From sequence record OP079919.1: a DNA stretch of 64,000 nucleotides; one strand, given 5' to 3'. Below are positions 4,920 through 55,894 of the stretch, one piece after another. The notes beneath the pieces are model-generated. The model ran no database searches, was not told the origin of the DNA, and saw only the letters and a list, made by a program, of their open reading frames with translations. The translations under genes and the position numbers were made by a program. Position 1 is the first letter of the stretch. The number at the start of each line of letters is the position of its first letter.

Positions 4920-6185
4920 ATGAGTAAATTGTTACTGGATCTGCTGGCTCGTCAGGGCAACGAAAACCTGGAAATCGAACTGGGTAATGGCGATACCGCT
5001 GTGATCGTTCCTGAGTCGGCCGAAGAAATCGCTGAAATGGCTGCTGAAAACGTCCTCGCTGAAACTTCCGAAGAACTGGAAGAACACGCCGACGACGTTG
5101 AAGACCTGTGCGACAAAGTTGAAGAACTGGAAGAGCAGGTTGAAGAACTGCAAGAAGTCGTTGAAGGCGCCGAAGCCCTCCTGCAACCGGGTACCCAGTG
5201 GAACCCTGCTGCGTTCGCCCTGCTGTATACCCGTGGTGAAAAACTGAACGCCAAAATGAGCGATACCGCTGTCCCGGTTATGGGTGCGGAATCTCTGGCT
5301 GACGCGACTACCGCCGAACTGTCTGCTCGTGAAGGCCTGGAAGCCATGGGCGCCACCGTGAAAAAATGGGGCTCTCAGGCGATCGCTTTCATCAAGAAAA
5401 TCTGGGATAGCCTGATCGCTTTCATCAAAGGCCTGTTCTCCAAAGCCACCGCGGTTAAGAACAAAGCGAAAGCTGTTGCCGCTCGCCTGGAAAAAACCGA
5501 AAAACTGAAAGAAACCATCAAGCTGGGCAAATGGAACGCGTTTGTCGGTGTTGGCGAAGGTCAGCCTAAATCTGCAACCGGTCTGTCCACTCTGATCGGC
5601 GCTGCCGGTAAAGTGGTAGCGGGTTCTGAAGCTCTGCTGTCTTCTCCGGGTAACGCCGCTGCGCTGGCAGGTCCGGTTAAAGAACTGAGCTCCGCTGCAG
5701 CTGGCCTGGACTCTGTTTTCGGCCCGGCTAAGAAAGCTGGCGGCGACAAAGCTGTTGCCGCTCACCAGTGGCGTGGTCTGACCATCGCGGTCGGTTATTA
5801 CGCTGGTAAAGTCGAAACCTTCGAAGATGTTGCGAAAGCCGCTAAAGCCATCCGCATCTCCTGGAAAGTTTCCGGCGGTAAAACCTCTGGCGAACACAAA
5901 GTCACCGACGGCAAAGACGCGCTGAAAAAATACATCAGCGACGCCAACGCTCTGGTTGACTCCATCGCTTCTTCTAAAGTTGAAGCGCAGTATGGCGCGG
6001 CTAAACGCGATCGCATCATCGGCCTGCTGAAAGCAGCTGATACCAAAGACGGCGAAGACGTGGGTAAAGCAGTTAACGCAGTGAAAGCTGCTCAGACCGC
6101 TCTGTCCTCTGTAACGACTTCCGCGACCCGTCTGGGCCTGGCTATCGCTAACGGCGAACTCGACTACGTACGTGCTTGCCTGTAA
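4920..6185 (+). CDS. Abundant internal head/ejection protein (phiKZ internal-protein paralog family, PF12699-like)
   Basis: Very strong highly-expressed codon bias; Glu-rich propeptide with GNE, GAE, GAE and GLE sites; amphipathic helix (AMGATVKKWGSQAIAFIKKIWDSLIAFIKGLF) after the last site; Ala/Lys-rich mature part. Confidence 0.7.
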   Translation: MSKLLLDLLARQGNENLEIELGNGDTAVIVPESAEEIAEMAAENVLAETSEELEEHADDVEDLCDKVEELEEQVEELQEVVEGAEALLQPGTQWNPAAFALLYTRGEKLNAKMSDTAVPVMGAESLADATTAELSAREGLEAMGATVKKWGSQAIAFIKKIWDSLIAFIKGLFSKATAVKNKAKAVAARLEKTEKLKETIKLGKWNAFVGVGEGQPKSATGLSTLIGAAGKVVAGSEALLSSPGNAAALAGPVKELSSAAAGLDSVFGPAKKAGGDKAVAAHQWRGLTIAVGYYAGKVETFEDVAKAAKAIRISWKVSGGKTSGEHKVTDGKDALKKYISDANALVDSIASSKVEAQYGAAKRDRIIGLLKAADTKDGEDVGKAVNAVKAAQTALSSVTTSATRLGLAIANGELDYVRACL

Positions 6186-13426: not shown

Positions 13427-14769
13427 TACCCGTTAATATTAGTAACGTTTTAGAACAGGCGAAGCAGGTTGCTGCAACCAAACGACCGACCATCTCCACA
13501 CTCGAGTTAACCCTCATAACCCCGGAATTACATTACCCCGTTCCTAACGTTCAGAGACTCTCTAAGAGTTCTAATTTCTTGGAGGACGGGACGGATGTTT
13601 GGGTCATTAACTTCTTGATGCAACCAGGGGTTTTCCTAAAACAGATTCTCCCGTACAAAGACAACTTGCTCGTTGACTTAGTGGAGAGTACAGGAATCAA
13701 TAGAACCCTTCGTCGCCTCCGGGCGACAGTTCCAATGGATGTTAACCCTCAAACCAATTCGGATAACAGCGTCTATATCGATCCCGGTGTGTTAGATCAA
13801 AACATGGTAGTTCCCATCACACTTATCTTGATCGATACGGTATACGAGCAGTTACGTAACCAACCACTGCTCGACAACTATTTGATGGCCACGACCAAAG
13901 ACGTTTTGCATAATGTTTGGAGTCAGCAAGGTCACGCCATCCAATCCAACGGGGTTAATAAGTTTAAAGGGGTCGACATTGAAGAACCCACAGATAACCC
14001 CAGGGTTTATCGGCAGATCATGGTCAAGCATGGCACACGTTTGACTCGCTTTGCCGACTATCTTCAGAACGAAGAAGGTTTAGGTATTTATACGCGTGGA
14101 TGTGGGTCGTTTTATCGAGAAGGGATTTGGTACGTATTCCCTATTTGTAAACCGGAAAGATACGGTACGGTGAAGAAATCCTTAGATATTTATAAGTTCC
14201 CAGAGGATATCCTGCCGGTAACGGAACAGACGTACGGAACGACGGCGAACTCCACGTTAATACTTTCTACCGGGCCGTCTAAATTGCTAGACGGTACCGA
14301 TAACCTGAGGCAGAATTTTGGGGCCGGTCAGCAGATCATTTCTTCGGATGCAATCGCGGGAGAAGTTGGTTCGCACTACAACAACGGAGCGAGCGTCACG
14401 CTACGGGCAGAGAAAGTCACGGAGTACAGAACCACCCAACGTGCCTCAGGGCAGGAGCTTATTGACGTCAACGCCACTCCAACCAATAACGTTTTTAAAG
14501 AGATAACTAAAAACGCCATGAGGGACTGCAAGGTACTGGAATTGAATTGGACTAACTCCAATCCTTTTCTCGTTACCCCAGGCGCCCCGGTTAAGTATTA
14601 TTTCCTTAATGAACAAGGAACACTCACTATTCAGGAAGGAACCGTAATATCGGAGAAAACCACGTATTACTCCGATTCAACCAGGCCCCTTACCCCGTTT
14701 AGAAAGAACTCTATCTTAACCATACTCCTGCTCCCTATTCAAAATACCACGATAACCCCGAACAATTAA
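13423..14769 (+). CDS. Virion protein, probable baseplate hub-like
   Basis: ATGA overlap with the upstream gene. Size (448 aa) and beta-rich composition are compatible with T4 gp27-like hubs; the function is inferred. Confidence 0.4.
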   Translation: MIPVNISNVLEQAKQVAATKRPTISTLELTLITPELHYPVPNVQRLSKSSNFLEDGTDVWVINFLMQPGVFLKQILPYKDNLLVDLVESTGINRTLRRLRATVPMDVNPQTNSDNSVYIDPGVLDQNMVVPITLILIDTVYEQLRNQPLLDNYLMATTKDVLHNVWSQQGHAIQSNGVNKFKGVDIEEPTDNPRVYRQIMVKHGTRLTRFADYLQNEEGLGIYTRGCGSFYREGIWYVFPICKPERYGTVKKSLDIYKFPEDILPVTEQTYGTTANSTLILSTGPSKLLDGTDNLRQNFGAGQQIISSDAIAGEVGSHYNNGASVTLRAEKVTEYRTTQRASGQELIDVNATPTNNVFKEITKNAMRDCKVLELNWTNSNPFLVTPGAPVKYYFLNEQGTLTIQEGTVISEKTTYYSDSTRPLTPFRKNSILTILLLPIQNTTITPNN

Positions 14770-14783
14770 AATTCAACATGGAG

Positions 14784-14814
14784 TTTTTTATAGCACTATA
14801 TAACCGCAGTGTAT
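14784..14814 (+). promoter_or_regulatory. Candidate early (virion-RNAP) promoter A
   Basis: TTTTTTATAGCACTATATAACCGCAGTGTAT aligns with the motifs at 19831, 25846 and 55148. Confidence 0.5.
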
Positions 14815-14856
14815 GAAAAACAAAATGTTATTTTTAATTTAATAGAGGAAATCATC

Positions 14857-15315
14857 ATGAAACGTTTTATCTCTGCGGCTATTCTTTCCGTTATTGCTAT
14901 GAGCGCTACCGCAACTGAAAATACCAACATCTGGGGCTGCGTCACAAATACAGGCAAAGTCGCTAGAGTCGACTTGGTAGAAGGAGCGGGCGGCGTTCAG
15001 GCAGTCTACACGTTCGGTAAGGCCGGGAGCAATCCAGAGCTCTCCGTTGTCAAGAAACCTTCTGACGTTAAGTATACTGAGAAAGAGGCTTACGCCAACG
15101 GTATCTTGCAAACCACGTATTACCAACTGACTTTTAATAACGGACAGTTCAGTTATATCACTGAACAGTTTAACAAGATCGGACGTCTTTATGTGCTCAA
15201 GAACGATAAAGTTATTTCGACCATTGAGTGCGAAGACATTATCGATGCCGGTGTTCTCGATAGCGAAAACATGATCAAGATCTTTCCTTACCATGAAAAG
15301 GTAAAGGATGAATAA
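14857..15315 (+). CDS. Sec-exported periplasmic protein, 152 aa
   Basis: ATG at 14857 with AGAGGA SD; classic signal peptide MKRFISAAILSVIAMSATA; two Cys (GCVT near the N-terminus, IECED near the C-terminus) in a beta-rich mature domain. Confidence 0.7.
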   Translation: MKRFISAAILSVIAMSATATENTNIWGCVTNTGKVARVDLVEGAGGVQAVYTFGKAGSNPELSVVKKPSDVKYTEKEAYANGILQTTYYQLTFNNGQFSYITEQFNKIGRLYVLKNDKVISTIECEDIIDAGVLDSENMIKIFPYHEKVKDE

Positions 15316-15319
15316 ACCT

Positions 15320-15370
15320 CCTACCTCCACCCATAAGGGTGGAGGTAGGGCAACCTAATTTATTTTTTTT
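15320..15370. terminator. Bidirectional terminator between convergent genes
   Basis: 13-bp perfect stem CCTACCTCCACCC-ATAA-GGGTGGAGGTAGG, with a downstream T-run. Confidence 0.75.
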
Positions 15371-16911
15371 TATCCTGCAAAATCAAAATCAGGAACTGAT
15401 TCGCCGTTTTCGTCTAACATGTGTTTAAAGGATTTCTTGCCAGTTGGTTTGGTATTAATATCGTGCACCAATCCTAATACCGGGTCTAACGGATGAATCC
15501 AGAATCTATCCGACATCTGAGGACCCTCCCCGCGGATTTTCCCTGCATAAAAGGTGTGGTACGCTTTATCGTCTATTGTTCTGGCAACGTGTATGGTTCC
15601 TTCGAAATCAACTTCGTTAGTAAGTTTAGTCGATCCTTCTGTCATAGACTTACCACCAACTTCTTTAGCGAAGTTGAGTTCTGCATCGTCGTCTGATTCA
15701 CGCAAGAACCGTTTGGCTTCAGGAGACAACTGATGTGGGGTATGGAAAGAAATACCGTGGTTTACGATAAATCCCCTTATGCGCTTGTAAAGGTCCTGAA
15801 GTTTATCAGAACGAGATTCCCCAGCTGTCCCTTTTAAGTTAGCCATAGCCAAGTAATCGTAAGCCCAAACTATGATCTCATGACCTTTCATCTGTAACTT
15901 ACGAATACGGTCAGTCATCTCATAATAGTTATCGTTGACGGGATCGACTCGGTTAATGATTAAGAACCAACCATTCTTCCTAAATCCGTCTGCGATGACT
16001 TGAGCGATGGTTTCCGGGGCTTCTTCTTTAAAGTCACCCTTATGACCGAATTGGTTAACCATGATAAGGCCGTACATACGCTCTATAATGATGTCTAACG
16101 CATCCTCAGCGGAATCCAGTACGATGGTAGGTATCTTAGACTTATCACGCAGCAGAGGTTTATTGTAGAGCCCTATGGAAGCAATGATGTGACTGAGGGT
16201 AAGAGACTTACCACGGTTCGTTAACGCGTTCCACAAATAAAACTTAGAACGTCTAACACCTTGGTCGGGCCCAAACGCTTTGTTCCATCCCTGCATCCCT
16301 AATTTCATTACCCCTTCACTCGAGGATTCTACTTTAGCCCTATTGATGATGTCGACCATCGAACCCAGGTTATCGGTATTGACCTCTTCTACCAAAGCGA
16401 CGTTCTTATCAGCCAATACGGCTTCCGTCAATTTGGTTTCAATCATGTCGGCTATTTTAGCCCACGTGGTTTTATCCGTTTTACTCGGATCACCAAAATA
16501 AAGTTCTTTAATTTCGTTCTTAAAATCTTTATTGAACTTATCATCCCCTACGGCTTTTTTGACTTCTTGAATATGACGATAAACAATTTGCCGTGTTCTT
16601 TCTTCGCTGGGGTAATCTTCTAATCCTGCTTCAATGGCTTTGGTTAACTCAGGCGCGTCTTTCATAAAGTCCATTACTCGTTGAGTGAGCAATGATTTTA
16701 TGATCGGCTCATCTTCGGGTTGAGCTAAAATCCAGTCGATGGTATCGCGAATAGCGGTTTCTATTTTTTTATCCTGCGTGAACAAATCACCTTTAGAAAT
16801 CGGTATTCCATTCAAAAGATCTTTCGCTTCCCCTAACAGAGTGACGTCTTTTATTTTTTTAATTTGGTACATCGCACTGAGAATCTTAACCAGGATCAGT
16901 AACGTGCTCAT
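15370..16911 (-). CDS. dnaB: Replicative DNA helicase, DnaB family (phiKZ gp118-like)
   Basis: Walker A variant NALTNRGKS, DSAED, Walker B WAYDYL, H3-like HQLS, GKIRG; minus-strand position just before the capsid genes, as in the phiKZ core block. Confidence 0.85.
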   Translation of the reverse strand: MSTLLILVKILSAMYQIKKIKDVTLLGEAKDLLNGIPISKGDLFTQDKKIETAIRDTIDWILAQPEDEPIIKSLLTQRVMDFMKDAPELTKAIEAGLEDYPSEERTRQIVYRHIQEVKKAVGDDKFNKDFKNEIKELYFGDPSKTDKTTWAKIADMIETKLTEAVLADKNVALVEEVNTDNLGSMVDIINRAKVESSSEGVMKLGMQGWNKAFGPDQGVRRSKFYLWNALTNRGKSLTLSHIIASIGLYNKPLLRDKSKIPTIVLDSAEDALDIIIERMYGLIMVNQFGHKGDFKEEAPETIAQVIADGFRKNGWFLIINRVDPVNDNYYEMTDRIRKLQMKGHEIIVWAYDYLAMANLKGTAGESRSDKLQDLYKRIRGFIVNHGISFHTPHQLSPEAKRFLRESDDDAELNFAKEVGGKSMTEGSTKLTNEVDFEGTIHVARTIDDKAYHTFYAGKIRGEGPQMSDRFWIHPLDPVLGLVHDINTKPTGKKSFKHMLDENGESVPDFDFAG

Positions 16912-17571: not shown

Positions 17572-19758
17572 ATGAAGCGTACAATTAACGTCCGCAAAGG
17601 CTCCACCGCTGTAAAACCCCTGAACCTCGCGATGAGCGACATGTTTAGTCAGGGCGGCTTTAAATCTTTTACTGGTGTTGAAAACCTGGATACTGCGACC
17701 GACCAGTTCAACGCCCTGTTTGCTGGCACCGAGTCACTGGCTAACGGTATTAGCCCAGAGTCTTCCAAACTGCTCAGCAACCTGACCAACTCTCAGCGTT
17801 TCGCGACCATCTCCAGCATCGCGTCGATGCAAAATGCATTCCCGACCATTGATCGTCGCCTGGCTGACTTCGCCGGTACCGAAGGTTTCTCAATGGCACA
17901 GTTTGCCGGTGAGTCCGCTAAAGTTAAAGGCGTGAACATCACTCTGAACGCCCTGTCTCACCGTCAGACTGACGCTGCTGAAGCGCTGTTCACCACCGTC
18001 ACCATCCCGTACGCTGAAGAGTACCTGGAGTTCTCCGTGCGTACTGCCGGCCTGGGTCGTTACATCTACGGTGCTGCTGCTGGCGAACGTGCTTCTGAGC
18101 TGGTACCGGTAATGAGCCTGATCCGCAAAGGTAAAGCCTTCATGGCCGATACCCTGCGCATGTATCCGGTTTATCCGACCGACTCGGCTGACCCGAACCG
18201 TAAATACTTCATGGCTGCGTCTATCGCCGCTGCTACCGAAGCGACCTACGATAGCGCCGATCCGCTGAACCGTCAAGCTCACCAGACCCAATACCTGAAA
18301 GTTCCAGTATCCATTCCGAACCTGGTTGGTCTGTCCGAAGCTCCGGGCCAGAACCCGTTCGAAACTTCTGATGAAGTTGAATCCAACTCCATCCAGATGA
18401 CTAACGTTGCACTGACCGCTAACGTCGGCGCTTCTGGTTCTGCTACCGCAGTTGTACTGCGTATGCCGACCGTGAACATGTCTCAGGCGCATTTCGGTAT
18501 CGCTGCAATGGGTGCTTCTTCTGACGATCGTCAGATGGACTTCCAGGTACAGGGTCTGCCGGCGTCTGCACTGTTCAACATGACCAGCGACACGGTCACT
18601 ACCGCTCTGGATGCACTGAAAGCGAATGGCGCTCAGCCGTTCTTCTCTCTGAGCATCACCGGTACTTACCAGCGTCAGACCAACACCCTGAAAATCCAGG
18701 GCGGCTCTTTCGAACTGGAATACATCAAAGATGCGGCTGGCAACAAACATCTGCCGACCACTTCCAGCGCGACCATCAAAGCTCTGTTCGGCCTGTTCGC
18801 TGATGGCGAAATCGCCGGTGTTGAACTGCGTTACAACCACACCAACATCAACCGTGTGAACTTCGGTTACCGTGTTGAAGTGTTTGACGCACGTAAAACT
18901 CTGACCACTCATCGTCAGACTCCGATCTCTGTTCGCTACCCGGTCAGCAAAGAAGATACCAATGAGGAATCTCTGAGCTACGCGATCGATCAGATGGCGA
19001 TTATCCTGAACGCACAGACCACCGCAAACGCGTTTACCAAAGCTGAAGAGCACGTCGAGTACGTGACCTCCATCAACGGTTCTGCGATCGTGGGTAACGA
19101 ACAGGCGTCCAACGTCCTGGCCGGTATGCACTATGCTAACGCTGCGGCGATCAACCGTACCCTGAAACTGGCTGACATCGTGTCTACCCAGGATAGCGTC
19201 GGTGTGGTCGACAACATCTCTGCGGCACTGTGCAACACCCTGAGCGAAATGGCAGCAGCGCTGGCCACTAACTCCGGTCTGGCTGCTATTGCCGAATACA
19301 CCCGTGAAAAACTGAAATGGCAGGTTGTTGCCCATCAGAACATGGGTCGTTACCTGATGCGTTCTGGCGACGCTCGTACCATGGGTGCGTATACCGACTT
19401 CGCGGTTGAACTGACTAACGTCGAAACCATGATCGGTAAATTCTACCTGGTACCGCAGTCCGAAACCGACGGCAACACCATCGACCCGCTGGGTGGCATG
19501 GGTGTCTGCGTTGATAAAGAGCACGTTGTTGTTCAGGGTGACGTAACCCGTACTGATCGTCAGTTCGGTATCCTGATGACCATGCCGATCTTCCAACACC
19601 ACTCTGTATGTCCGATCGTCGGCGTACTGACTGTTGAAGACGCGGTACTGGCTCTGAACGACGAAGGCCTGATCGACGCTCTGGCTAAACAGCGCGTTGT
19701 GGTTAACGGCGTTGTACAGTCTGAAGTCGACGCTGTAGACGACGGTCAGCTGCCGTAA
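17572..19758 (+). CDS. Major capsid protein (phiKZ gp120-like)
   Basis: 728 aa; strongest codon optimisation in the window; propeptide with TGVE, AGTE and AGTE sites (residues 34-37, 51-54, 101-104); core-block synteny. Confidence 0.85.
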   Translation: MKRTINVRKGSTAVKPLNLAMSDMFSQGGFKSFTGVENLDTATDQFNALFAGTESLANGISPESSKLLSNLTNSQRFATISSIASMQNAFPTIDRRLADFAGTEGFSMAQFAGESAKVKGVNITLNALSHRQTDAAEALFTTVTIPYAEEYLEFSVRTAGLGRYIYGAAAGERASELVPVMSLIRKGKAFMADTLRMYPVYPTDSADPNRKYFMAASIAAATEATYDSADPLNRQAHQTQYLKVPVSIPNLVGLSEAPGQNPFETSDEVESNSIQMTNVALTANVGASGSATAVVLRMPTVNMSQAHFGIAAMGASSDDRQMDFQVQGLPASALFNMTSDTVTTALDALKANGAQPFFSLSITGTYQRQTNTLKIQGGSFELEYIKDAAGNKHLPTTSSATIKALFGLFADGEIAGVELRYNHTNINRVNFGYRVEVFDARKTLTTHRQTPISVRYPVSKEDTNEESLSYAIDQMAIILNAQTTANAFTKAEEHVEYVTSINGSAIVGNEQASNVLAGMHYANAAAINRTLKLADIVSTQDSVGVVDNISAALCNTLSEMAAALATNSGLAAIAEYTREKLKWQVVAHQNMGRYLMRSGDARTMGAYTDFAVELTNVETMIGKFYLVPQSETDGNTIDPLGGMGVCVDKEHVVVQGDVTRTDRQFGILMTMPIFQHHSVCPIVGVLTVEDAVLALNDEGLIDALAKQRVVVNGVVQSEVDAVDDGQLP

Positions 19759-19814: not shown

Positions 19815-19830
19815 ATGCCCGATCCTTAAA

Positions 19831-19860
19831 TTTTTTAAGAACTATATTATCTCTGGGTAA
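19831..19860 (+). promoter_or_regulatory. Candidate early promoter B
   Basis: TTTTTTAAGAACTATATTATCTCTGGGTAA; the core resembles the phiKZ early TATTAC element and precedes the nvRNAP subunit operon. Confidence 0.55.
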
Positions 19861-20971: not shown

Positions 20972-22642
20972 ATGGATCCTAAGTTACTGAAAGCGGTATC
21001 GGCTACGATGCCTAAGTTTAATGAAACGATAGCTTCAGGTTTCCATCAACGAGAATTTGAGCAAATACATAAACGTTATGAATATCTTTTAAGAATGACG
21101 TTTGAACCCATTGAAAAGAAAGGAGTATGGTTTGTTGGCGTCAGGTCGGTACGACCTCATGAAATGTATAACGTCATCGCGAAGAACACACAGCAGAAAA
21201 CCTTTGAAACAAACAAAGAAAGTCTTTATCCGGTTAAGCTCGTCTTTAAATACGGGATGGATAAAAATACTGCCAGGGAGATGGATCCTGTTTACGTACT
21301 CCTTCCGTTCTGTGATCGGTATGGGGACGTTTGGATCAGGGGAAGTCAATACAGCCTACAGATCGTCCTGGCTGACCGAGGATTGAGTGTCACTAAAGAC
21401 GATCAGATCTTCGTAAGACTCCTGGGATATAAATTCAAAGTAGGAACTGAGCAATATGAGTATACTCAGATCCACAATGAAATAAATCCCGTCAGGGAAA
21501 CCAACCTTCCTATTAACCTTCCAGCCAACCGCTTCTACGTGGCCAGTGAAGCACGTCGTCCAAACCCAACTAAAACACCCACACCTTTATTGGCGTGGTA
21601 TGTGTTTGCGGAGTATGGTTTTAGCGAAACCATGCGTAAGTTCGGGGAATGCGATTACGCGATAGGTGATCGTGATGCGATCATTCAGCAATATAGTGAA
21701 GATAAAGGTTGGAAGCTGTTTGGCAGTAAAGGATTGGCGATTGGTAAAAGTATCACGCCATATGTGAATTGCGGGTTAGCTATAGCGGCTAAACCATTAA
21801 ACGAAAAACGAAGAGGGGAAATACCTAACGTTGCACAACAGTATATTGCGGCATTGCTTTATCTGTGTGATGTTGGCGGAGAATTTATTGATTTGGATAA
21901 ACTCGACGATAAATATTTTTGGCGTATGATGGTCGGACACGCCAGTATTAAAGCCGGAGGAAATCTCACCCATTTGGAAAAACAGATGGCGGATCACTTC
22001 GATTCCATGAACGAAGGTTTAGACCAAACAAGTATCCAACGATTCGCTGAGCAACGAATCGTGGTTAAAGATCGTTATGAATTGTTTAATTACATCATAG
22101 CGAACCGGGCTGAAATCGTTAAGACTTCCGATAAAGCCAATATGTTACATAAAGAAATTAGTTCTAGTGAGTTCACATTAGACAAACTGATTACTGCGGC
22201 TAACCGCTTTAAACACGATGTCAAAAACACAACAGAACTCAACTATGAACGTGTTAAGTCATTCATGTCATCTCATTTCAAATTACGCGATATCGAATCG
22301 GCTGCTTGGGAATCTAACATGATCCAAGAAGCTACGCCGACAGATTGCCCTATCGCCGATTATGGCTTTGGGGTGATGTCTCAGGCGAAAGTGTTCGGTC
22401 CTCGTAATAACGGGAGAAACAGTGACTTTAACCCTAACGATCCCGCTAACTGCATACATGGCTCTGTACCTTTTGTGATGAGTTTCCAACGGGTAACTAA
22501 ACCCGACCCAAACGCTTGCGGATTCTTAGCCCCCTGCGTGTATTTGATCAACGACAAATACTTGGGACTCAGACCAGAAGATGTGGAACTGTACGAAGCC
22601 ACTGTGAGCAGACTTACTAAGTCTGAGGTTAAAATTAAATGA
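20972..22642 (+). CDS. Non-virion RNA polymerase beta-like subunit, N-terminal part (phiKZ gp123-like)
   Basis: Beta-subunit-like motifs LPFCDRYGDVWIRGSQYSLQIVLAD and the C-terminal NPANCIHGS...KPDPNACGFLAP; position two genes after the MCP, as in phiKZ. Confidence 0.7.
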   Translation: MDPKLLKAVSATMPKFNETIASGFHQREFEQIHKRYEYLLRMTFEPIEKKGVWFVGVRSVRPHEMYNVIAKNTQQKTFETNKESLYPVKLVFKYGMDKNTAREMDPVYVLLPFCDRYGDVWIRGSQYSLQIVLADRGLSVTKDDQIFVRLLGYKFKVGTEQYEYTQIHNEINPVRETNLPINLPANRFYVASEARRPNPTKTPTPLLAWYVFAEYGFSETMRKFGECDYAIGDRDAIIQQYSEDKGWKLFGSKGLAIGKSITPYVNCGLAIAAKPLNEKRRGEIPNVAQQYIAALLYLCDVGGEFIDLDKLDDKYFWRMMVGHASIKAGGNLTHLEKQMADHFDSMNEGLDQTSIQRFAEQRIVVKDRYELFNYIIANRAEIVKTSDKANMLHKEISSSEFTLDKLITAANRFKHDVKNTTELNYERVKSFMSSHFKLRDIESAAWESNMIQEATPTDCPIADYGFGVMSQAKVFGPRNNGRNSDFNPNDPANCIHGSVPFVMSFQRVTKPDPNACGFLAPCVYLINDKYLGLRPEDVELYEATVSRLTKSEVKIK

Positions 22643-25776: not shown

Positions 25777-25782
25777 TCGTCT

Positions 25783-25814
25783 TCCCTACCACTCCTTAAC
25801 TGGGGTGGTAGGGA
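25783..25814 (+). terminator. Intergenic hairpin
   Basis: TCCCTACCACTCC-TTAACT-GGGGTGGTAGGGA. Confidence 0.65.
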
Positions 25815-25845
25815 GTAAGAAAGCTCTAATTTTTTAACATGAAGA

Positions 25846-25875
25846 TTTTTATAAGTCGATATCATTCAGGTGTAT
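25846..25875 (+). promoter_or_regulatory. Candidate early promoter C
   Basis: TTTTTATAAGTCGATATCATTCAGGTGTAT aligns register-for-register with promoter A. Confidence 0.5.
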
Positions 25876-25918
25876 AAACAACAAGTATTTTAATTCTTAT
25901 TCACTAAAGAGGTCCAAA

Positions 25919-26491
25919 ATGGAAATTCGTAAAGATATGATCAATGAAATCGCCGCTCGTATCATCTCTGGTTGCAACGACGTGGAAGCCAGTGTCCGCG
26001 AAAAGCTGCTGCGTAATTTGGTTAATGGTGAGATCTGGCAGTTCGAGCTCAATGAAACTGAGCAAGCGGAACTGATCGCGATCGTAAGCAAAGAGTTCGG
26101 TATTTCCGATCTGGTCTACGTCGAACCGCAGAAAAACATTTCTGAAGAAGATGTCGCCAAAGTCGCTGCCAGTGTTAACGGGCATGTCGAACACAAATAT
26201 CTGAATCTGCGAAATGCGATGGCGGTCGGCGCAGTACTCGGTGCCGGTGCGGCCATCTTAAAAGAAGGTGCGAACGCAATTAATGCCGGTGCTGGTGTGG
26301 TCGGCGCTGCTGTTTCTTACGGCGTGGGTTATCTGGCTGACAAGAAACAGATCGGTATGGGTAATCAGTACGCTGATGTCGCGGCAGGCATTGTTGCCGG
26401 TGGCGTTATCGGTGGTGGCGCTGTATTTGGCGCGGGCTTTGTCGCCAAACGTTTCTTCAGCGATGAAGAAGTTGAAGTTGTTGCAGAGTAA
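25919..26491 (+). CDS. Glycine-zipper membrane protein 1, 190 aa
   Basis: AGAGG SD; soluble N-terminal domain, then three GxxxG-rich hydrophobic helices; acidic tail; optimised codons. Confidence 0.7.
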   Translation: MEIRKDMINEIAARIISGCNDVEASVREKLLRNLVNGEIWQFELNETEQAELIAIVSKEFGISDLVYVEPQKNISEEDVAKVAASVNGHVEHKYLNLRNAMAVGAVLGAGAAILKEGANAINAGAGVVGAAVSYGVGYLADKKQIGMGNQYADVAAGIVAGGVIGGGAVFGAGFVAKRFFSDEEVEVVAE

Positions 26492-26554
26492 TAAACGCAT
26501 CTGAAATATCCGATGCATCTTAAATTAAACTATCAATAGTAAGGAAATACGATC

Positions 26555-26947
26555 ATGAAAAAAGAAAACATTGAACTGACTGGCACCGAACTCGACGAAG
26601 CTAAAGCAATGCTGGCTGTTGATGCAGAAACTTCTCTGTTCGACGATATCTGTGAAAAACTCGGTGGCTACGTAGCTACCGACAAACAGAAAAGCCACGT
26701 GAAAGCCGCAGTGATCGGTGGCGTCATCGGCACCGCCCTGGGCATGGCGAGCAAACCATCTGTCGGCACGCTGATCGGTGGCGTGGTTGGTACCGCAGGC
26801 GGCGCTTATGTGGGTAGTCGTATCGCTGATGATCTGAGCAATCAGTTCATTGACAAACTGCTCACCGCTGACATTGGCTTCCTGTGCAGCACCATCGGGG
26901 CGTCCATCGGTAGTGCATTAACCCCGAGTAAAGTCGAAGCGAACTAA
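26555..26947 (+). CDS. Glycine-zipper membrane protein 2, 130 aa
   Basis: AAGGA SD; VIGGVIGTALG, LIGGVVGTAGGAYVG and TADIGFLCSTIGASIG segments. Confidence 0.7.
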   Translation: MKKENIELTGTELDEAKAMLAVDAETSLFDDICEKLGGYVATDKQKSHVKAAVIGGVIGTALGMASKPSVGTLIGGVVGTAGGAYVGSRIADDLSNQFIDKLLTADIGFLCSTIGASIGSALTPSKVEAN

Positions 26948-27015
26948 ATCTTCTAGTCCGTTTAAACACTGTTAAATTTTAGGCAACTCAACATCAAAAC
27001 GTAAGAGGTATTATC

Positions 27016-27411
27016 ATGGATATGGCAAACAAACCTGCAGTTAACAAAGCTCCTCTGTCAGAAGAAGAAATTCTGAAAATGCTGGCCGGTCACAAATCCA
27101 CCGATGTCAACTATCGGGTCGGTCGAATCGCCGGTGTACTGGGCGCGGTCGTCGGCGGCGCACATCGCACCGTCACTCAAGGTATCAAACCATCAACTGT
27201 TGTCGGCACAGTCGTCGGCGGATTAGTTGGGTACAAAACTGGCAAACTCGCGGATGGCTTCAGTGACCTGACGGGAACGCATTCCCCGGTCGCGGATGTC
27301 GGCGCATTCACAGCAGGTTACGGCGTGACTCTGGGCATGAGCGCCCTGGCAGCCACCTTCGATCAGTACATCACTCCGCTGTACGAATCAGAAGAAGAAA
27401 CCGAAGAATAA
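27016..27411 (+). CDS. Glycine-zipper membrane protein 3, 131 aa
   Basis: AGAGG SD; IAGVLGAVVGG, VVGTVVGGLVGY and VADVGAFTAGYGVTLG segments; acidic tail. Confidence 0.7.
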   Translation: MDMANKPAVNKAPLSEEEILKMLAGHKSTDVNYRVGRIAGVLGAVVGGAHRTVTQGIKPSTVVGTVVGGLVGYKTGKLADGFSDLTGTHSPVADVGAFTAGYGVTLGMSALAATFDQYITPLYESEEETEE

Positions 27412-27417
27412 GAAAGT

Positions 27418-27470
27418 TAACTCCTCTACCCGTAAGGGTAGAGGAGTTACTTAATTACTTATTTTTTTTT
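27418..27470. terminator. Bidirectional terminator
   Basis: 14-bp perfect stem TAACTCCTCTACCC-GTAA-GGGTAGAGGAGTTA between convergent genes; T-run follows. Confidence 0.75.
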
Positions 27471-30439
27471 TATTCTGGAAGGGTATCGTCAACTTGGAAG
27501 TCGTCTTTCTTATTGCCGTCTTCTTCTGTCTCTGTTTCTTCCTCGGTTTGGGTTTCTTCTTCCTCGGAAGCGTCTGTTCCCGTCTCTTCTTCCTCAGTCG
27601 TTCCACCTTCCCCAGGCAAATCTTCCTCTATTGAGAAATCGTCGTCTGTCTGAGTTCCCTCTTCAGGGGTACCCTCATCAGCAGGTGGGGCGCCGAACTC
27701 ATCCGCCGGAGGCTGTTCCGCAGGCATAATCTTTTCCAAACGTTTAGTCAGTCGATCAGTCTCTTTATTCCAGACCTTCATGAACTGTTCTAAGAACATT
27801 CCACTGTTGTCTACGTACTGAGATATGTTGTGGATTAACGAATAGACCCCGCCCTCTTTACCCTTGTTACCGATAAGATCGAACGGCATAGGGAGGTTGA
27901 ATCGATCATAAAGTTCAATTAGATAAGTACTGCGAATAATGGATTTGACTTTCTCAATATCCAACCCGCCGCTACCATCAGTTTTGTTCATGATCTGTTC
28001 AATCAGACCGGAAGTCCCTGACATTTCAACCCACGAGTTTACAAACTGATTGACCGTATCGATTTTATCTTTCAGTTTGGTTACTGATTCCTGAGTAGCC
28101 GGAGTCGGTAAGGTCACGGTGAGGTTGTTGATAAAGTCAGCCAGGATAACTTCAACGATGTGCTCGTTAGTTCCCTCTATCTCTTCGCCGTTATCAGGTT
28201 TCCACAACGACTTATTCTCGTTAATGGTATCGACCAAACGATTCAACATAACCTGGTTAACTAACAGGTCCTTGCGTTCGATCTCAGCAACAAAGTCACC
28301 CAATACCTTCTGCCAAATCAACGTTTGGTTGCGAAGCATTTCCTGCTCGGCCAATGCCTCGACCTGGAAGTTGGTTCCTTCTTCTTTATCGTCCAACCAA
28401 GTACGTTGGAGTTTAAAAGTGGAGGCGATGTTGTTGAGGAGGTTCTGTCTGGAGGTTTCGTCGATAGCTTTGAAGTTACCGCGTTCAACCGGCTCCAGGG
28501 TTATCTTGGGTCCGACCATCCACGGGTTACCGTTACTATTAACCTCAACGATCAGGGATTGAGTCTTCATTGCTTCAACAATGTCGGGTACTGAAACAGT
28601 ACCGGAGTTTACCACGTTGTGAAGCGTTGGGTTTACCCTGAAGAACTGAGCCCTGGCCATAGCAATGGTTCCATCCGGATCAACGTCGTCTTCTTCCAGA
28701 TCAACCACTAAACGCTGACGAGTTTGAGCCTGATCCAAGTTAGCCAGAATGTCAGCGGTATCCAACGCCGCCAGGCGACCGATATGGAGTTTAGCCTGGT
28801 TGGTTAAAGAAGAACCAATACCAAAGCTATTGTAGTCAAACGCGACGTAGGTGAAGTACTCTGCCGGAATGTAAAGAACCCGAACACCCTGCTGTTTGAA
28901 AGAACGAGCCAGGAAGATCTTCAGGTTAGCTTCGACCAATTCAACAGAAATATTTTTCCCACTCACGCCGGAAGCAATAGCCTGGATAAGGGATTTTTCT
29001 ATTTGATCCTTCGATAACAGGGTGAATTCTGACATATCGAAGTCACAATCGGCACCTTGCTGAACTTTCTTCAGGTTAGCGATAAGTGCGTTGGTTCCAC
29101 TCGTTTTATTAGGTGTGTCGATCTTATCTTTCTGACCCTTAGTGGACTGATAGAAGTTAAAGTCTCTTGTGCTTTTTAAGAACTCACCGTTGGACGGGTC
29201 AAGCAAGGCGAACCCACCAATGAGCTTAGTTCTATCACCTTCCATATGAACAGGAATAAAGGCTTCACTCGGAATATGGTACCGTAAGGGAATGCCATAA
29301 ACTGAGGTGTCGTAAACCCCTGGACTGCGAACACTGATGGTTTGACGATGTGGGTAACTGCGGTGCGGATAAAACTCATTCTGAAGAACTTCCAGTTGGC
29401 TTTCCGACAAGATCTGAGTTTTAGTATCAGCGTTAGGCGTCCCGTTCTTACGTTTAGCCTTAGAGTCGTCAGGTTCTTTATTCGACTTCTTAGGATCTTC
29501 CTTTTTCTTATCCTTGGTCGCCGCAGTCTCTTCTTCGCCTTCCTCACCTTTTTTCTCTAGACGAGATTTAATAAGGGAAGCGAGATCTTCTGTCCCGCCG
29601 ATGTCGTTAACGATCTTCTTCGTTAAAACCTGATTCACGGAACGAAGAGCCAGAACCGCCGGGTTGTCTGTCAAGGTAATCCCGAACCCTTCGCCTTCAT
29701 CATTCTCGATCAATTCGAATTCAGTTGAGGCATCTGGGGCGGAGTGACTAAACAAAGCCTCTAGCCCGTGAACGACGTTATTGAGCTGCTTAGGACCCCT
29801 CACCAATCCTTTGTTGATGGCGAGAAACTTACCGTCCACATTTTTAAATTGCTTCTCAATCTCTGGTTTTATCTGAGTGTTAATGTAACTTTCGTTACCT
29901 GTCACTCCGTCTTCCCCAAACTGTTGACCGTTGATAAGGTGATCCAGCGCAGGTCTAGAGATGTTCAAAAGCACGTAGGACCCTGTGCCGAATAACCCGT
30001 CTTTGATGAACTCCGGTAACAACTTCTCGATTTTATAGTCGCTGGTATAGTAGGTTTCCGTCTTACGGAGCAACTCTTCATGCAGCTTAGTATTTTTAAA
30101 TTGAGACCGCAAAGTATCGTGAGTAAGGATCCTTTCCTGTAATCCGTTCGGGTAGAGGAGAAGCGTCTTCCAGATTAATTCCGCCCGCGAAACATAAGGT
30201 GTGATTTCCCTTAAGTCAGTTGCCGCATTGATATTGTTGGCAATGATATCGCTGATCTTTTTTAATTTGGAAGGTTGGACTTTACGTTCTTTCTCATCCG
30301 TATTTCTGGTATGATCTCTCTCGTCCCGAACGAGGTTCCGAACGACGCTTTTTAACGAGGGGCTGATATTGTTTAAATTACCCCTGAGTTTGGTTTGATC
30401 GAGGTAATCATATCCTCGGGTTGAACGCGTTCTATTCAT
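27470..30439 (-). CDS. Portal protein (phiKZ gp129-like)
   Basis: 989 aa, minus strand and divergent from the baseplate genes, as in phiKZ-like genomes; N-terminal region with TGNE, HGLE and GGTE sites; acidic disordered C-terminal tail. Confidence 0.75.
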   Translation of the reverse strand: MNRTRSTRGYDYLDQTKLRGNLNNISPSLKSVVRNLVRDERDHTRNTDEKERKVQPSKLKKISDIIANNINAATDLREITPYVSRAELIWKTLLLYPNGLQERILTHDTLRSQFKNTKLHEELLRKTETYYTSDYKIEKLLPEFIKDGLFGTGSYVLLNISRPALDHLINGQQFGEDGVTGNESYINTQIKPEIEKQFKNVDGKFLAINKGLVRGPKQLNNVVHGLEALFSHSAPDASTEFELIENDEGEGFGITLTDNPAVLALRSVNQVLTKKIVNDIGGTEDLASLIKSRLEKKGEEGEEETAATKDKKKEDPKKSNKEPDDSKAKRKNGTPNADTKTQILSESQLEVLQNEFYPHRSYPHRQTISVRSPGVYDTSVYGIPLRYHIPSEAFIPVHMEGDRTKLIGGFALLDPSNGEFLKSTRDFNFYQSTKGQKDKIDTPNKTSGTNALIANLKKVQQGADCDFDMSEFTLLSKDQIEKSLIQAIASGVSGKNISVELVEANLKIFLARSFKQQGVRVLYIPAEYFTYVAFDYNSFGIGSSLTNQAKLHIGRLAALDTADILANLDQAQTRQRLVVDLEEDDVDPDGTIAMARAQFFRVNPTLHNVVNSGTVSVPDIVEAMKTQSLIVEVNSNGNPWMVGPKITLEPVERGNFKAIDETSRQNLLNNIASTFKLQRTWLDDKEEGTNFQVEALAEQEMLRNQTLIWQKVLGDFVAEIERKDLLVNQVMLNRLVDTINENKSLWKPDNGEEIEGTNEHIVEVILADFINNLTVTLPTPATQESVTKLKDKIDTVNQFVNSWVEMSGTSGLIEQIMNKTDGSGGLDIEKVKSIIRSTYLIELYDRFNLPMPFDLIGNKGKEGGVYSLIHNISQYVDNSGMFLEQFMKVWNKETDRLTKRLEKIMPAEQPPADEFGAPPADEGTPEEGTQTDDDFSIEEDLPGEGGTTEEEETGTDASEEEETQTEEETETEEDGNKKDDFQVDDTLPE

Positions 30440-35514: not shown

Positions 35515-35520
35515 GAAAGT

Positions 35521-35554
35521 TATACTCCTCCTACCCTAGGGTAGGAGGAGTATA
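35521..35554. terminator. Bidirectional terminator (34-bp perfect palindrome)
   Basis: TATACTCCTCCTACCCTAGGGTAGGAGGAGTATA between convergent genes; T-rich flank. Confidence 0.75.
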
Positions 35555-35566
35555 TTTATTTTATTA

Positions 35567-55147: not shown

Positions 55148-55165
55148 CTATATTATCTTAGAGAA
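55148..55165 (+). promoter_or_regulatory. Candidate early promoter D
   Basis: CTATATTATCT core identical to promoter B; lacks the upstream T-run. Confidence 0.45.
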
Positions 55166-55167
55166 CC

Positions 55168-55207
55168 GTGAAGGGTGTCTCATTTTCTCTTACACCCTTC
55201 ACTTTTT
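55168..55207 (+). terminator. Hairpin with U-tract
   Basis: GTGAAGGGTGT...ACACCCTTCAC (11 bp, 13-nt loop) followed by TTTTT. Confidence 0.55.
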
Positions 55208-55225
55208 ACTACGAGGAAATAAAAA

Positions 55226-55894
55226 ATGAAGACCGCATTTGGTTTAATGTTCATTCTTATCATGGGGATAAGTAGCGCATTCGCATCAGTGAGTACATCT
55301 CAGTCGGATTATCACTATTTTAATAAACAGAAAACTTACATTTTCGAAGCATCCAAACTTACGGGGATCTCCCCTGAATTAGTTACCGCAATAGGTTCCA
55401 TAGAAAGTGGCCTGGGGCGTAATAAAGTTAATCGGTATTCTAAAGTCAAAGGTGTGATGCAAACCACCAAGCGGACTTATAACTCTAACCTCAAGAAACA
55501 CCACGAAAGACTTGGGTTATCTCCTAACGCTTCTATCAAAAACGATAGAGCAAATATCTTAGTTGCTACCGCAGCATTAGCAGATAACAAACGTTACTTA
55601 GAGAAAGTCACGAATAAAAAAATCACAGATGGGGATGTGTTCATTTCCCATCTGGTAGGTTTAGGTGGCGCAGCTAAAATAATCAAAGGCAAACCCAACG
55701 CCCCCATAAGCCGTTATATCGCACTTCATAAAGGTAACATGCGACTCTATACTGACAAAGGACGGGTATTGACCGTGGCGCAGTTTAGGAGGAGTATGGA
55801 TCGGCTGGTAAAGAAAGAAAGCGCGAAGTATGCCGTGGTTATCAATCAGAACAAGTTGGATCGTTTGATAACAGCTGTCGCGTATAATCAATAA
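55226..55894 (+). CDS. Lytic transglycosylase (SLT; phiKZ gp144-type catalytic domain) with N-terminal signal peptide
   Basis: Catalytic motif AIGSIES, GVMQ, D-RANIL and SHLVGLGGA; N-terminus MKTAFGLMFILIMGISSAFA is a cleavable Sec-type signal; GAGG SD. Confidence 0.8.
   Translation: MKTAFGLMFILIMGISSAFASVSTSQSDYHYFNKQKTYIFEASKLTGISPELVTAIGSIESGLGRNKVNRYSKVKGVMQTTKRTYNSNLKKHHERLGLSPNASIKNDRANILVATAALADNKRYLEKVTNKKITDGDVFISHLVGLGGAAKIIKGKPNAPISRYIALHKGNMRLYTDKGRVLTVAQFRRSMDRLVKKESAKYAVVINQNKLDRLITAVAYNQ

Follow-up and report, generated by a model that had tools for sequence, protein, structure and literature searches.

A candidate early unit of three paralogous glycine-zipper proteins beside the portal gene of the nucleus-forming phage KPN8

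Glycine-zipper proteins and small membrane proteins of phages

The glycine zipper is a known helix-packing device, present for instance in the bacterial envelope proteins of families PF13488 (Gly-zipper_Omp), PF13441 (YMGG-like) and PF05433 (glycine zipper 2TM), in which short helices of the G-x-x-x-G type form a hairpin. Three small genes with helices of this kind, called here A, B and C (together, the triad), are the subject of this work; the product of B belongs formally to a Pfam family built on the motif. They are located in a stretch of 64,000 nucleotides (the window) that corresponds to positions 1-64000 of Klebsiella phage KPN8 (OP079919.1), with 100% identity and the same coordinates. 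KPN8 is a Miamivirus that encodes chimallin. The three open reading frames (ORFs) are annotated as KPN8_22, KPN8_23 and KPN8_24 in this record and as gp041-043 in phage Miami, every label being "hypothetical". The overall explanation that we put forward, tentatively, is that an early autonomous unit makes abundant paralogous glycine-zipper proteins which would form a mixed membrane complex altering the host envelope.

The bacterial glycine-zipper proteins named by NCBIfam (YiaD, CmpA and TagQ) are exported lipoproteins that carry signal peptides and extra domains. The triad proteins differ from them in the absence of a signal peptide or conserved lipobox, in having three helices instead of two, and in the presence of an acidic tail. 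Caulobacter CdzC/CdzD and the two-peptide class IIb bacteriocins are also comparable, since they consist of several side-by-side glycine-zipper peptides thought to act jointly in the membrane. This likeness, to which, in the case of CdzC/CdzD, a model reading the DNA letters alone had pointed (the original prediction), holds for composition but not for family membership: the Pfam matches to Bacteriocin_IIc (E 0.009-0.21) and MccV (E 0.23) are far below cut-off. Moreover, CdzC/CdzD and class IIb bacteriocins are secreted with leaders and act on other cells, whereas the triad proteins have no leader peptide, are larger and possess cytoplasmic N-terminal regions.

Class I holins of the LydA type, with three transmembrane (TM) segments, are similar to the triad proteins in being small, in their three helices and in their charged C-terminus. 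They differ in that the triad consists of three paralogues with helices of far lower hydrophobicity. In virulent phages, small membrane proteins made early usually serve for an immunity-like block or for a change of membrane permeability or stability. For instance, Imm and Sp of phage T4 are early membrane proteins responsible for immunity and superinfection exclusion. The triad, as proposed here, would share with them a small size, early synthesis, a lytic phage and the envelope as the site of action. Proteins of this type are encoded by single genes and not by three paralogues, and no sequence or fold relation with the triad appeared in any search, none of which compared the sequences of Imm and Sp directly.

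Nucleus-forming jumbo phages pass through a membrane-bound stage before the protein shell is made. A recent review of these phages names no phage membrane protein, and nothing on glycine-zipper or membrane proteins in this family was found in the literature. KPN8 can be placed in the Chimalliviridae, since KPN8_265 is a homologue of chimallin/PhuN (PhiPA3 PhuN, PDB 8fne, E 1.4e-4). A gene for the tubulin-like PhuZ is also annotated in its genome. In a core-genome study of nucleus-forming phages, Miami serves as a distant relative of RAY.

Organisation, promoter and codon usage of the triad unit

The features of the unit, with the evidence for each, are the following (aa, amino acids):

25782..25815, plus strand: terminator hairpin that closes the unit before the triad (KPN8_21) and shields the triad from transcription begun upstream (fold energy)
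25826..25879, plus strand: early-type promoter-like element (matrix score, conservation)
25919..26491, plus strand: gene A, KPN8_22, 190 aa (ORF and annotation)
26555..26947, plus strand: gene B, KPN8_23, 130 aa (ORF and annotation)
27016..27411, plus strand: gene C, KPN8_24, 131 aa (ORF and annotation)
27414..27472, both directions: hairpin (27414-27452) and T-run (27459-27472), common to the triad and the convergent portal gene (fold energy)

Thus, terminator, promoter, three genes and terminator follow one another in that order, which agrees with the self-contained unit described in the original prediction. The upstream hairpin has a fold energy of -28.1 kcal/mol (z -5.95) and none of 200 shuffles was equally stable. 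The three ORFs lie where they had been predicted, each with its own Shine-Dalgarno site of the AGGA/GAGG type 6-9 nt upstream. The spacers between A and B (63 nt) and between B and C (68 nt) do not contain another promoter-like site. A small hairpin at 26497-26516 in the A-B spacer is not significant (spacer -7.7 kcal/mol, z -1.4); this spacer is identical in KPN8 and Miami at 63 of 63 positions. The downstream hairpin and T-run extend right up to the point where the convergent portal gene has its stop codon, and the hairpin is stable on both strands (-27.5 kcal/mol on the plus strand and -26.1 on the minus strand; z -6.3 and -6.8; 0 of 200 shuffles equally stable in either case). This element is taken, as originally proposed, to be a terminator for both directions, although the terminator scan marks the hairpin on the minus strand only, the T-run of the plus strand beginning about 7 nt past the stem.

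The promoter-like element is composed of the AT-rich AATTTTTTAA (25828-25837), TTTTTATAAG (25846-25855), the core GATATCATT (25858-25866) and then a conserved GGTGTATAAAC stretch; the coordinate from which the original prediction started the region, 25846, falls within it. It was recognised by reading the whole KPN8 genome, where an element formed by an AT-rich run, a short spacer and a nine-base core recurs. The short exact strings TTTTTATARG, AATTTTTTAA and ATTTTATG are not significant alone within the window, and the promoter emerged only genome-wide. When a matrix built from 11 canonical KPN8 copies, excluding that of the triad, was used to score 512,612 positions, the triad site at 25858 reached 19.2 and ranked 19. 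There are 19 KPN8 sites with at least this score, whereas 20 first-order Markov random genomes yielded none (best 17.3). On the plus strand are 27 of the 28 top sites, many of them shortly 5' of annotated gene starts.

The KPN8 motif matches the predicted early-promoter consensus tabulated for phiKZ, EL, 201phi2-1, OBP and N1M2 (PMC7058600, Table 2), and the triad core has one mismatch to the published consensus of phiKZ, EL, OBP and N1M2. The phiKZ-type early promoters used by the virion RNA polymerase have a conserved AT-rich core of about 10 nt that recurs before early operons and lies some 10 nt 5' of the transcript start; the triad site conforms to this type in its core and in the recurrence of the motif. 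According to a review (PMC7598289), such motifs can be found before presumed early operons in every jumbo phage with its own RNA polymerases, and in each one with profiled transcripts they proved to be early promoters. Other KPN8 copies precede the chimallin gene KPN8_265 (219092) and the PhuZ tubulin gene (211848), and further ones precede genes for a chaperonin-like protein, a helix-turn-helix regulator and RNA polymerase subunits. By motif homology and by the genes that it accompanies, the triad promoter is thus classed as early, as had been supposed. A scan for sigma-70 promoters gave 4 hits, against 4.2 in shuffles; this lack of excess is consistent with a phage that uses its own polymerases. 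The element is identical at 141 of 142 positions in KPN8 and Miami, and the synonymous divergence (dS) of the adjoining genes is 0.06-0.28.

Other copies of the motif deserve mention. The one at 19829-19851 (score 38.2, among the best) is located between the major capsid gene and an operon with KPN8_18, a polymerase subunit gene and a 797-aa gene; this operon, amid head genes, may also be transcribed early. A copy at 55149 stands just 5' of the putative lytic transglycosylase gene KPN8_43 (55149-55894), whose product has an N-terminal hydrophobic segment (residues 4-22, mean Kyte-Doolittle (KD) hydropathy 2.09) that resembles a signal sequence or one of the signal-anchor-release type. In KPN8_15, a promoter-like copy (core 14797; region 14797-14860) includes the annotated GTG start (14809); the true start looks to be an internal Met, after which comes a stretch resembling a signal peptide.

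The codon usage of the triad was measured with an E. coli-type list of optimal codons, and the result was repeated with a host-independent measure. The frequency of optimal codons is 0.77 for B, 0.67 for A and 0.66 for C (ranks 4, 11 and 14 of 270), against a genome mean of 0.51 (standard deviation 0.077); the capsid gene reaches 0.85 and the chimallin gene 0.81. Once amino-acid composition is taken into account, optimal codons are in excess by +0.23 in B, +0.12 in C and +0.11 in A (ranks 4, 17 and 20 of 270). The host-independent log-ratio, calculated with the four most biased genes of the phage as reference, places the triad at ranks 4, 11 and 12 of 270. B, the most codon-adapted of the triad, is therefore fourth by all three measures. 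The original prediction had considered the triad as optimised as the capsid gene: codon adaptation is indeed unusually high and B roughly approaches the capsid gene, but A and C do not (the composition-corrected excess of the capsid gene is +0.315). High expression of the triad proteins is a reasonable reading of these values. It is apparently a trait of the family, since the homologue of an EL-like phage (described below) ranks 6 of 194 by the host-independent log-ratio.

The triad proteins and their relatives

The gene A product has an N-terminal helical acidic region (approximately residues 1-90), which is probably a soluble domain, followed by Gly/Ala-rich helices at residues 97-116, 120-142 and 150-180 and an acidic tail. 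That of gene B consists of a short acidic N-terminus and three Gly-rich helices, without an acidic tail, and that of gene C of a short N-terminus, Gly-rich helices at residues 35-55, 59-86 and 91-113, and an acidic tail. The net charge over the last 12 residues is -5 in A and -6 in C; B has no such tail. None of the three N-termini contains a hydrophobic signal-like segment. Thus, the lack of a signal peptide and the acidic tails in two of the three proteins, both claimed originally, were found as described, and the quoted helix-2 and helix-3 strings are present as written. The common anchors are a Tyr and an Ala-Asp that end helix 2 and an Ala-Asp that opens helix 3, with short loops between helices; a three-way alignment of the cores has 14 invariant columns. 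AlphaFold2 models built on a small family alignment gave C a mean predicted local distance difference test score (pLDDT) of 74.7; between residues 31 and 120, the averages of successive 10-residue blocks are 74-92. The model of A, with seven helices, is less confident (mean pLDDT 64). A signal peptide with a lipobox cysteine, of the YiaD or SlyB/Pcp type, was not found in A, B or C. The residues ISGC at positions 16-19 of A could suggest a lipoprotein, but they follow a charged N-terminus and a metagenomic orthologue (L019, see below) lacks the cysteine, so this reading was discarded.

Against Pfam, B scores 27.9 bits with PF13488 (E 2.3e-6), above the cut-off of 25 bits, and all five B-type members match this family; A and C reach no cut-off, B being the only formal member. 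The weaker Pfam matches all correspond to small membrane-protein families (DUF456, DUF1269, Transgly_assoc and C19orf12). The nearest NCBIfam entries are glycine-zipper envelope lipoproteins, at 13-21 bits against cut-offs of 99-300. Gene A product has no Pfam or PHROG family. In the PDB, sequence searches listed only reductases and a synthase (E 0.049-0.33), which were discarded, and the best fold matches had E 0.88 (A) and 2.1 (C). No characterised relative was found in PDB, PHROGs or the other family and fold searches.

In PHROGs, B and C match tape-measure proteins and large proteins of unknown type, always in glycine-rich segments (E 3.5e-4 to 0.08). Tape-measure and ejection proteins carry hydrophobic glycine-rich segments, so these matches could indicate that the triad proteins are packaged in the virion and insert into the host membrane during DNA delivery. 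The position of the unit amid head genes and a codon adaptation comparable to that of structural proteins would fit such a role. However, the matches are weak and compositional, the early-type promoter is common to non-virion early genes and the terminators insulate the unit from the head operons. A weaker argument, from labels of unchecked basis, comes from OBP_131, the look-alike gene of phage OBP (see below): its neighbours carry the label of virion structural proteins, but OBP_131 only that of a hypothetical one. An ejection role is thus highly improbable.

The claim that the three genes are paralogous is sustained, with one qualification. Pairwise BLASTP gave E values of 0.002 for A-C, 0.024 for B-C and 3.6 for A-B. 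With the cores alone, phmmer scored 17.7 bits for A-C and 16.3 bits for B-C, whereas 1000 composition-preserving shuffles reached at most 11.6 and 10.4 bits, respectively (0 of 1000 in each case); the A-B score of 2.3 bits is not significant. Since A-C and B-C beat all shuffles and A-B does not, C is the link by which A and B are related. An iterated profile search of all ORFs of the KPN8 genome did not detect any further copy of the family. The ratios of nonsynonymous to synonymous divergence with respect to Miami are 0.04 for A, 0.20 for B and 0.10 for C, so that the triad is under purifying selection.

The triad region is also present in six further records of the Miami group with 94-97% identity. 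Direct searches with each protein (5.8 billion proteins, word-indexed; tblastn of 50,697 phage records with E up to 1) found only relatives of at least 89% identity, and no relative was found among the viral contigs of IMG/VR. When 1.84 billion representative proteins were searched with a profile made from the three cores, only seven genuine clusters came out: two of A-type, two of B-type and three of C-type. Four very large repeat proteins (1131-2103 aa, with 4-12 matched stretches each) were set aside as spurious, repeat-driven matches.

The order A-B-C is maintained in three metagenomic relatives, called L019, L020 and L017. In L019, an ~800-aa gene and a ~200-aa gene are followed by A, B, C and the convergent portal gene; L020 has the same order with a shorter B (98 aa), and L017 is a short contig with A (partial), B and C. 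Orthologues are 23-48% identical across the four lineages (KPN8, L019, L020 and L017). For A, identity is 44% for P0010/L019 and 24% for L020, the L017 copy being partial; B orthologues are 32-45% identical. The invariant residues are mostly glycines spaced at i+4: G104/G108 and G161/G165 in A, G55/G59, G75/G79 and G115/G119 in B, and G64, G68, G72 and G76 in C. Since these glycines are invariant across lineages, the glycine zipper is a conserved property and not a by-product of composition, and the three-helix glycine-zipper core with conserved anchors of the original prediction is upheld.

In several other phages, the block between the ~800-aa gene and the convergent portal gene contains genes whose products have Gly/Ala-rich helices and mostly acidic tails. 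Two such look-alike genes exist in Vibrio phage VP4B (148 and 160 aa, with one extra gene between them and the portal gene) and in Aeromonas phage AhC3_1 (ORF192 and ORF193). There is one in Erwinia phages Joad/RisingSun (gp87), Pseudomonas phage OBP (OBP_131) and Edwardsiella phage pEt-SU (pEt-SU_070). In the EL-like phage GXNNA8, a soluble-looking protein is encoded beside the portal gene, and a scan of this genome with the local family profile gave a single match (E 8.8e-5), a 118-aa protein whose gene directly follows the ~800-aa gene, at a distance of 11 kb from the portal gene. This member was missed by tblastn with Joad gp87.

Regulatory sequences accompany these genes. A homologous promoter precedes the first gene of the group in every look-alike case, and the corresponding gene in eight lineages altogether (L019, L020, VP4B, Joad, OBP, pEt-SU, AhC3_1 and the EL-like phage). 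Its core varies among lineages, being canonical in OBP, pEt-SU, AhC3_1 and L019, and the ...GTGTA...-type sequence that follows it is conserved. A hairpin upstream of the promoter can be recognised in VP4B, Joad, AhC3_1, L019, L020 and the EL-like phage; in the OBP and pEt-SU spacers the promoter is present without a clear upstream hairpin. Between the look-alike gene and the portal gene, a hairpin followed by a conserved T-rich tail is found in L019, L020, OBP, pEt-SU and Joad; in VP4B and AhC3_1 the hairpin at this place has a T-rich tail of similar kind.

This T-rich tail (ACTTATTTTTTTT in the portal-adjacent copies), a few bases after a terminator hairpin, was noted in the regions 27452-27472 and 35515-35566 of the window, 6291-6346 of L019 and 7414-7471 of L020, and downstream of the portal gene in L004-L006. 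As it is common across genera, it may be part of the termination signal for phage polymerases.

The look-alikes and the triad share the same block, the terminator-promoter-gene-terminator layout, the homologous promoter, the Gly/Ala-rich helices and mostly acidic tails. They differ in that the look-alikes, all of them unannotated, occur in one or two copies and not three, and that their similarity to the triad is at the edge of detection. In a Foldseek comparison of the C model with viral predicted structures, the EL protein Q2Z0Z9 (118 aa) was matched with E 5e-3 and probability 1.0 and a RisingSun protein with E 0.05 and probability 0.99, together with a protein of Aeromonas phage PS1 and, at lower ranks, proteins of N1M2, pEt-SU and a Vibrio phage. 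Taking position, regulatory sequence, architecture and fold together, and not sequence alone, the look-alikes are probably distant homologues of a single unit, which duplication would have brought to three copies in the Miami-like lineages. The original prediction had suggested looking for syntenic triads beside the portal gene: full ones occur only in Miami-like lineages, with one or two look-alikes in several genera and none at this site in 201phi2-1 or in Shewanella phage FishSpeaker. This mixed distribution makes a universal role in the biology of the early vesicle across the family unlikely.

The surroundings of the triad in the window are chiefly head and tail genes, among which the following were identified:

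4920-6185: internal head protein gene (phrog_5750)
17572-19758: gene taken as the major capsid gene
20972-22642: polymerase subunit gene (phrog_2943)
upstream side of the triad block: 797-aa gene (phrog_13213)
27470-30439, minus strand: portal-like gene, convergent with the triad (phrog_3004, E 6.6e-212)

Phage T4 gp40 is thought to anchor or chaperone the portal protein gp20 at the inner membrane, and the proximity of the portal gene raises the question of whether A, B and C could do the same as a membrane platform for procapsid initiation. The genes are convergent with the portal gene and share a terminator with it in Miami-like phages, VP4B, Joad, OBP, pEt-SU and AhC3_1, and the portal protein has a long acidic C-terminus. 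Furthermore, capsids of nucleus-forming phages are reported to assemble on a membrane (PMC10299810). On the other hand, the EL-like member lies 11 kb from the portal gene, beside the ~800-aa gene. Moreover, the spacer that separates these two genes is a zone of variable insertion, so the adjacency may be incidental. The unit also has its own early promoter and terminators, outside the head operons, and a portal initiator does not need to be abundant. In addition, the family was not seen in phiKZ-type phages (at the 201phi2-1 portal site or among the top 50 BFVD matches), in which membrane assembly has been described. We consider this role very unlikely.

Two further observations concern this region. 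An ORF of 513 aa at 15370-16911 (minus strand), within a 1.6-kb gap without an annotated gene in OP079919.1, encodes a DnaB-like replicative helicase (phrog_3213, E 2.4e-159). The record OR529409.1 (Stenotrophomonas phage BUCTxx100) is, over its positions 14326-16016, 96.9% identical to Klebsiella phages despite its Stenotrophomonas label, and this host label may deserve checking.

Probable membrane location and possible functions

The mechanism that we propose would operate as follows. An autonomous early transcription unit, placed within the late head-gene region of a chimallin-encoding jumbo phage, would direct the synthesis of three abundant paralogous small proteins, whose short Gly/Ala-rich helices would pack via conserved small-xxx-small faces. 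A, B and C would be made in the cytoplasm without a signal peptide, inserted as helical hairpins in the host inner membrane and assembled as a mixed oligomer. The acidic tails and the N-terminal domain of A would be left free for contacts, and the complex would change the envelope, either by blocking further DNA entry, in an immunity-like manner, or by altering membrane permeability or stability. The mixed oligomer is proposed because the duplicated subunits are kept in a fixed order; on these grounds such an assembly may or may not form, with even chances.

Several observations weigh against this explanation. With respect to the membrane, hydrophobicity was estimated with a simple Hessa scale and the KD scale (best 19-residue windows), and the triad windows are marginal, at +2.5 to +9 kcal/mol and KD means of 0.9-1.9. 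Only residues 158-176 of A, in its third helix, reach the classical TM range (KD 1.88), the other windows being at 0.9-1.3 and overlapping with what the capsid protein and chimallin attain in their most hydrophobic parts (+5 to +6.5 kcal/mol). Regarding early expression, the triad core GATATCATT differs at one position from the canonical ATATTAT, a change shared by only 2 other sites of the top 28. Copies of the motif also stand before the lytic transglycosylase gene (55149) and before the operon that includes a gene for an RNA polymerase subunit (19843), so that the expression of the triad need not be exclusively early. With respect to conservation, the cross-genus matches are weak in jackhmmer (E 0.0025 and 0.008, yet the best non-self ones among 883 ORFs) and in hhalign (probability 23%, P 8.7e-4, 49 columns). 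At the portal-adjacent site, 201phi2-1 has an unrelated 428-aa virion protein and no look-alike, and none of the top 50 BFVD matches was a protein of phiKZ, PhiPA3, 201phi2-1 or Goslar. The family is thus absent, at that site and among those matches, from the model phages of the nucleus-forming family, and would therefore not be a universal part of the infection cycle. The weight of the proposal is also limited in that the membrane location is itself deduced.

Because hydrophobicity is marginal, a soluble helical bundle is a serious alternative. In the same phage, the windows of a PnuC-like transporter are at +0.7 to +4.6 kcal/mol and the spanin anchor is at -2.1; the triad windows are weaker than these TM helices and overlap instead with those of capsid protein and chimallin. 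The uncharged stretches are short in places (13-16 residues in helix 1 of B and C) and no signal peptide is present. Moreover, the triad is co-regulated, by motif, and co-adapted with chimallin and PhuZ. Against solubility, B passes the Pfam cut-off of a glycine-zipper family, the nearest NCBIfam relatives are envelope lipoproteins, the weak family matches are all to small membrane-protein families, and the fold matches, although not significant, are dominated by membrane proteins. The helices, 21-28 residues long and nearly charge-free, would also be hard to keep soluble. Thus, a soluble bundle appears fairly unlikely. Membrane insertion is plausible, because long uncharged helices are difficult to maintain in solution and glycine-zipper families are membrane families, and it would take place from the cytoplasmic side, given the lack of a signal peptide. 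On this evidence, membrane association of the triad proteins is rather likely.

If the proteins are in the membrane, a role in lysis has to be weighed, namely that of a holin/antiholin-like set of three-helix membrane proteins with charged C-termini that would time lysis by gating the access of endolysin. The Foldseek search with the C model lists many annotated holins (LydA type III and others) with probabilities of 0.5-0.98, for example over 88 columns with a root-mean-square deviation of 4.0; their E values are 0.29-2 and the shape is a generic three-helix one. No holin is annotated in KPN8 or Miami, spanin genes are found 8 kb from the triad in the same conserved block, and the lytic transglycosylase KPN8_43, encoded 28 kb from the triad, has the same promoter motif and an N-terminal hydrophobic segment. 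However, no holin family was matched in Pfam, PHROGs or NCBIfam, the tails are acidic and not basic, and the triad is not adjacent to endolysin or spanin genes. Holins are expressed late, usually from genes beside these. Neither a promoter shared with chimallin and PhuZ nor a very high codon adaptation is usual for a holin. KPN8 also offers better candidates with two or three canonical TM segments, such as 93611-93937 and 111781-112203. A function in lysis timing is therefore quite unlikely.

These two ORFs belong to a set of small unannotated KPN8 proteins with two or three strongly hydrophobic segments, encoded in early-gene regions (93611-93937, 111781-112203, 108414-108818, 118333-118677, 138250-138438 and 140775-141572), which includes the likeliest holin candidates of the phage.

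Returning to the mixed membrane complex, exclusion of further DNA or a change of permeability or stability would be the likeliest role that such a complex, abundant and made early by a lytic phage, could have. It is preferred because such roles are usual for early small membrane proteins of virulent phages, and by this analogy it is possible, if doubtful. A more specific version is an abundant mixed-subunit glycine-zipper channel or lattice, made within minutes of infection, that would act on an infection-specific bilayer. Candidates for this bilayer are the membrane around the early-infection vesicle, which has to yield later to the protein shell, and the inner membrane where the phage DNA enters. 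We regard this version as unlikely; if true, it would be the first phage-encoded early membrane machine described in nucleus-forming phages.

What appears to be new, as judged from the genomes compared, is an early-type, highly codon-adapted and terminator-insulated cassette. Within one branch of the nucleus-forming phages it is maintained in several genera, promoter included, and the Miami-like lineages have it in three copies whose order is fixed. The triad is thus a clearly delimited candidate, by its motif co-regulated with the shell protein and the tubulin of these phages and codon-adapted like them.

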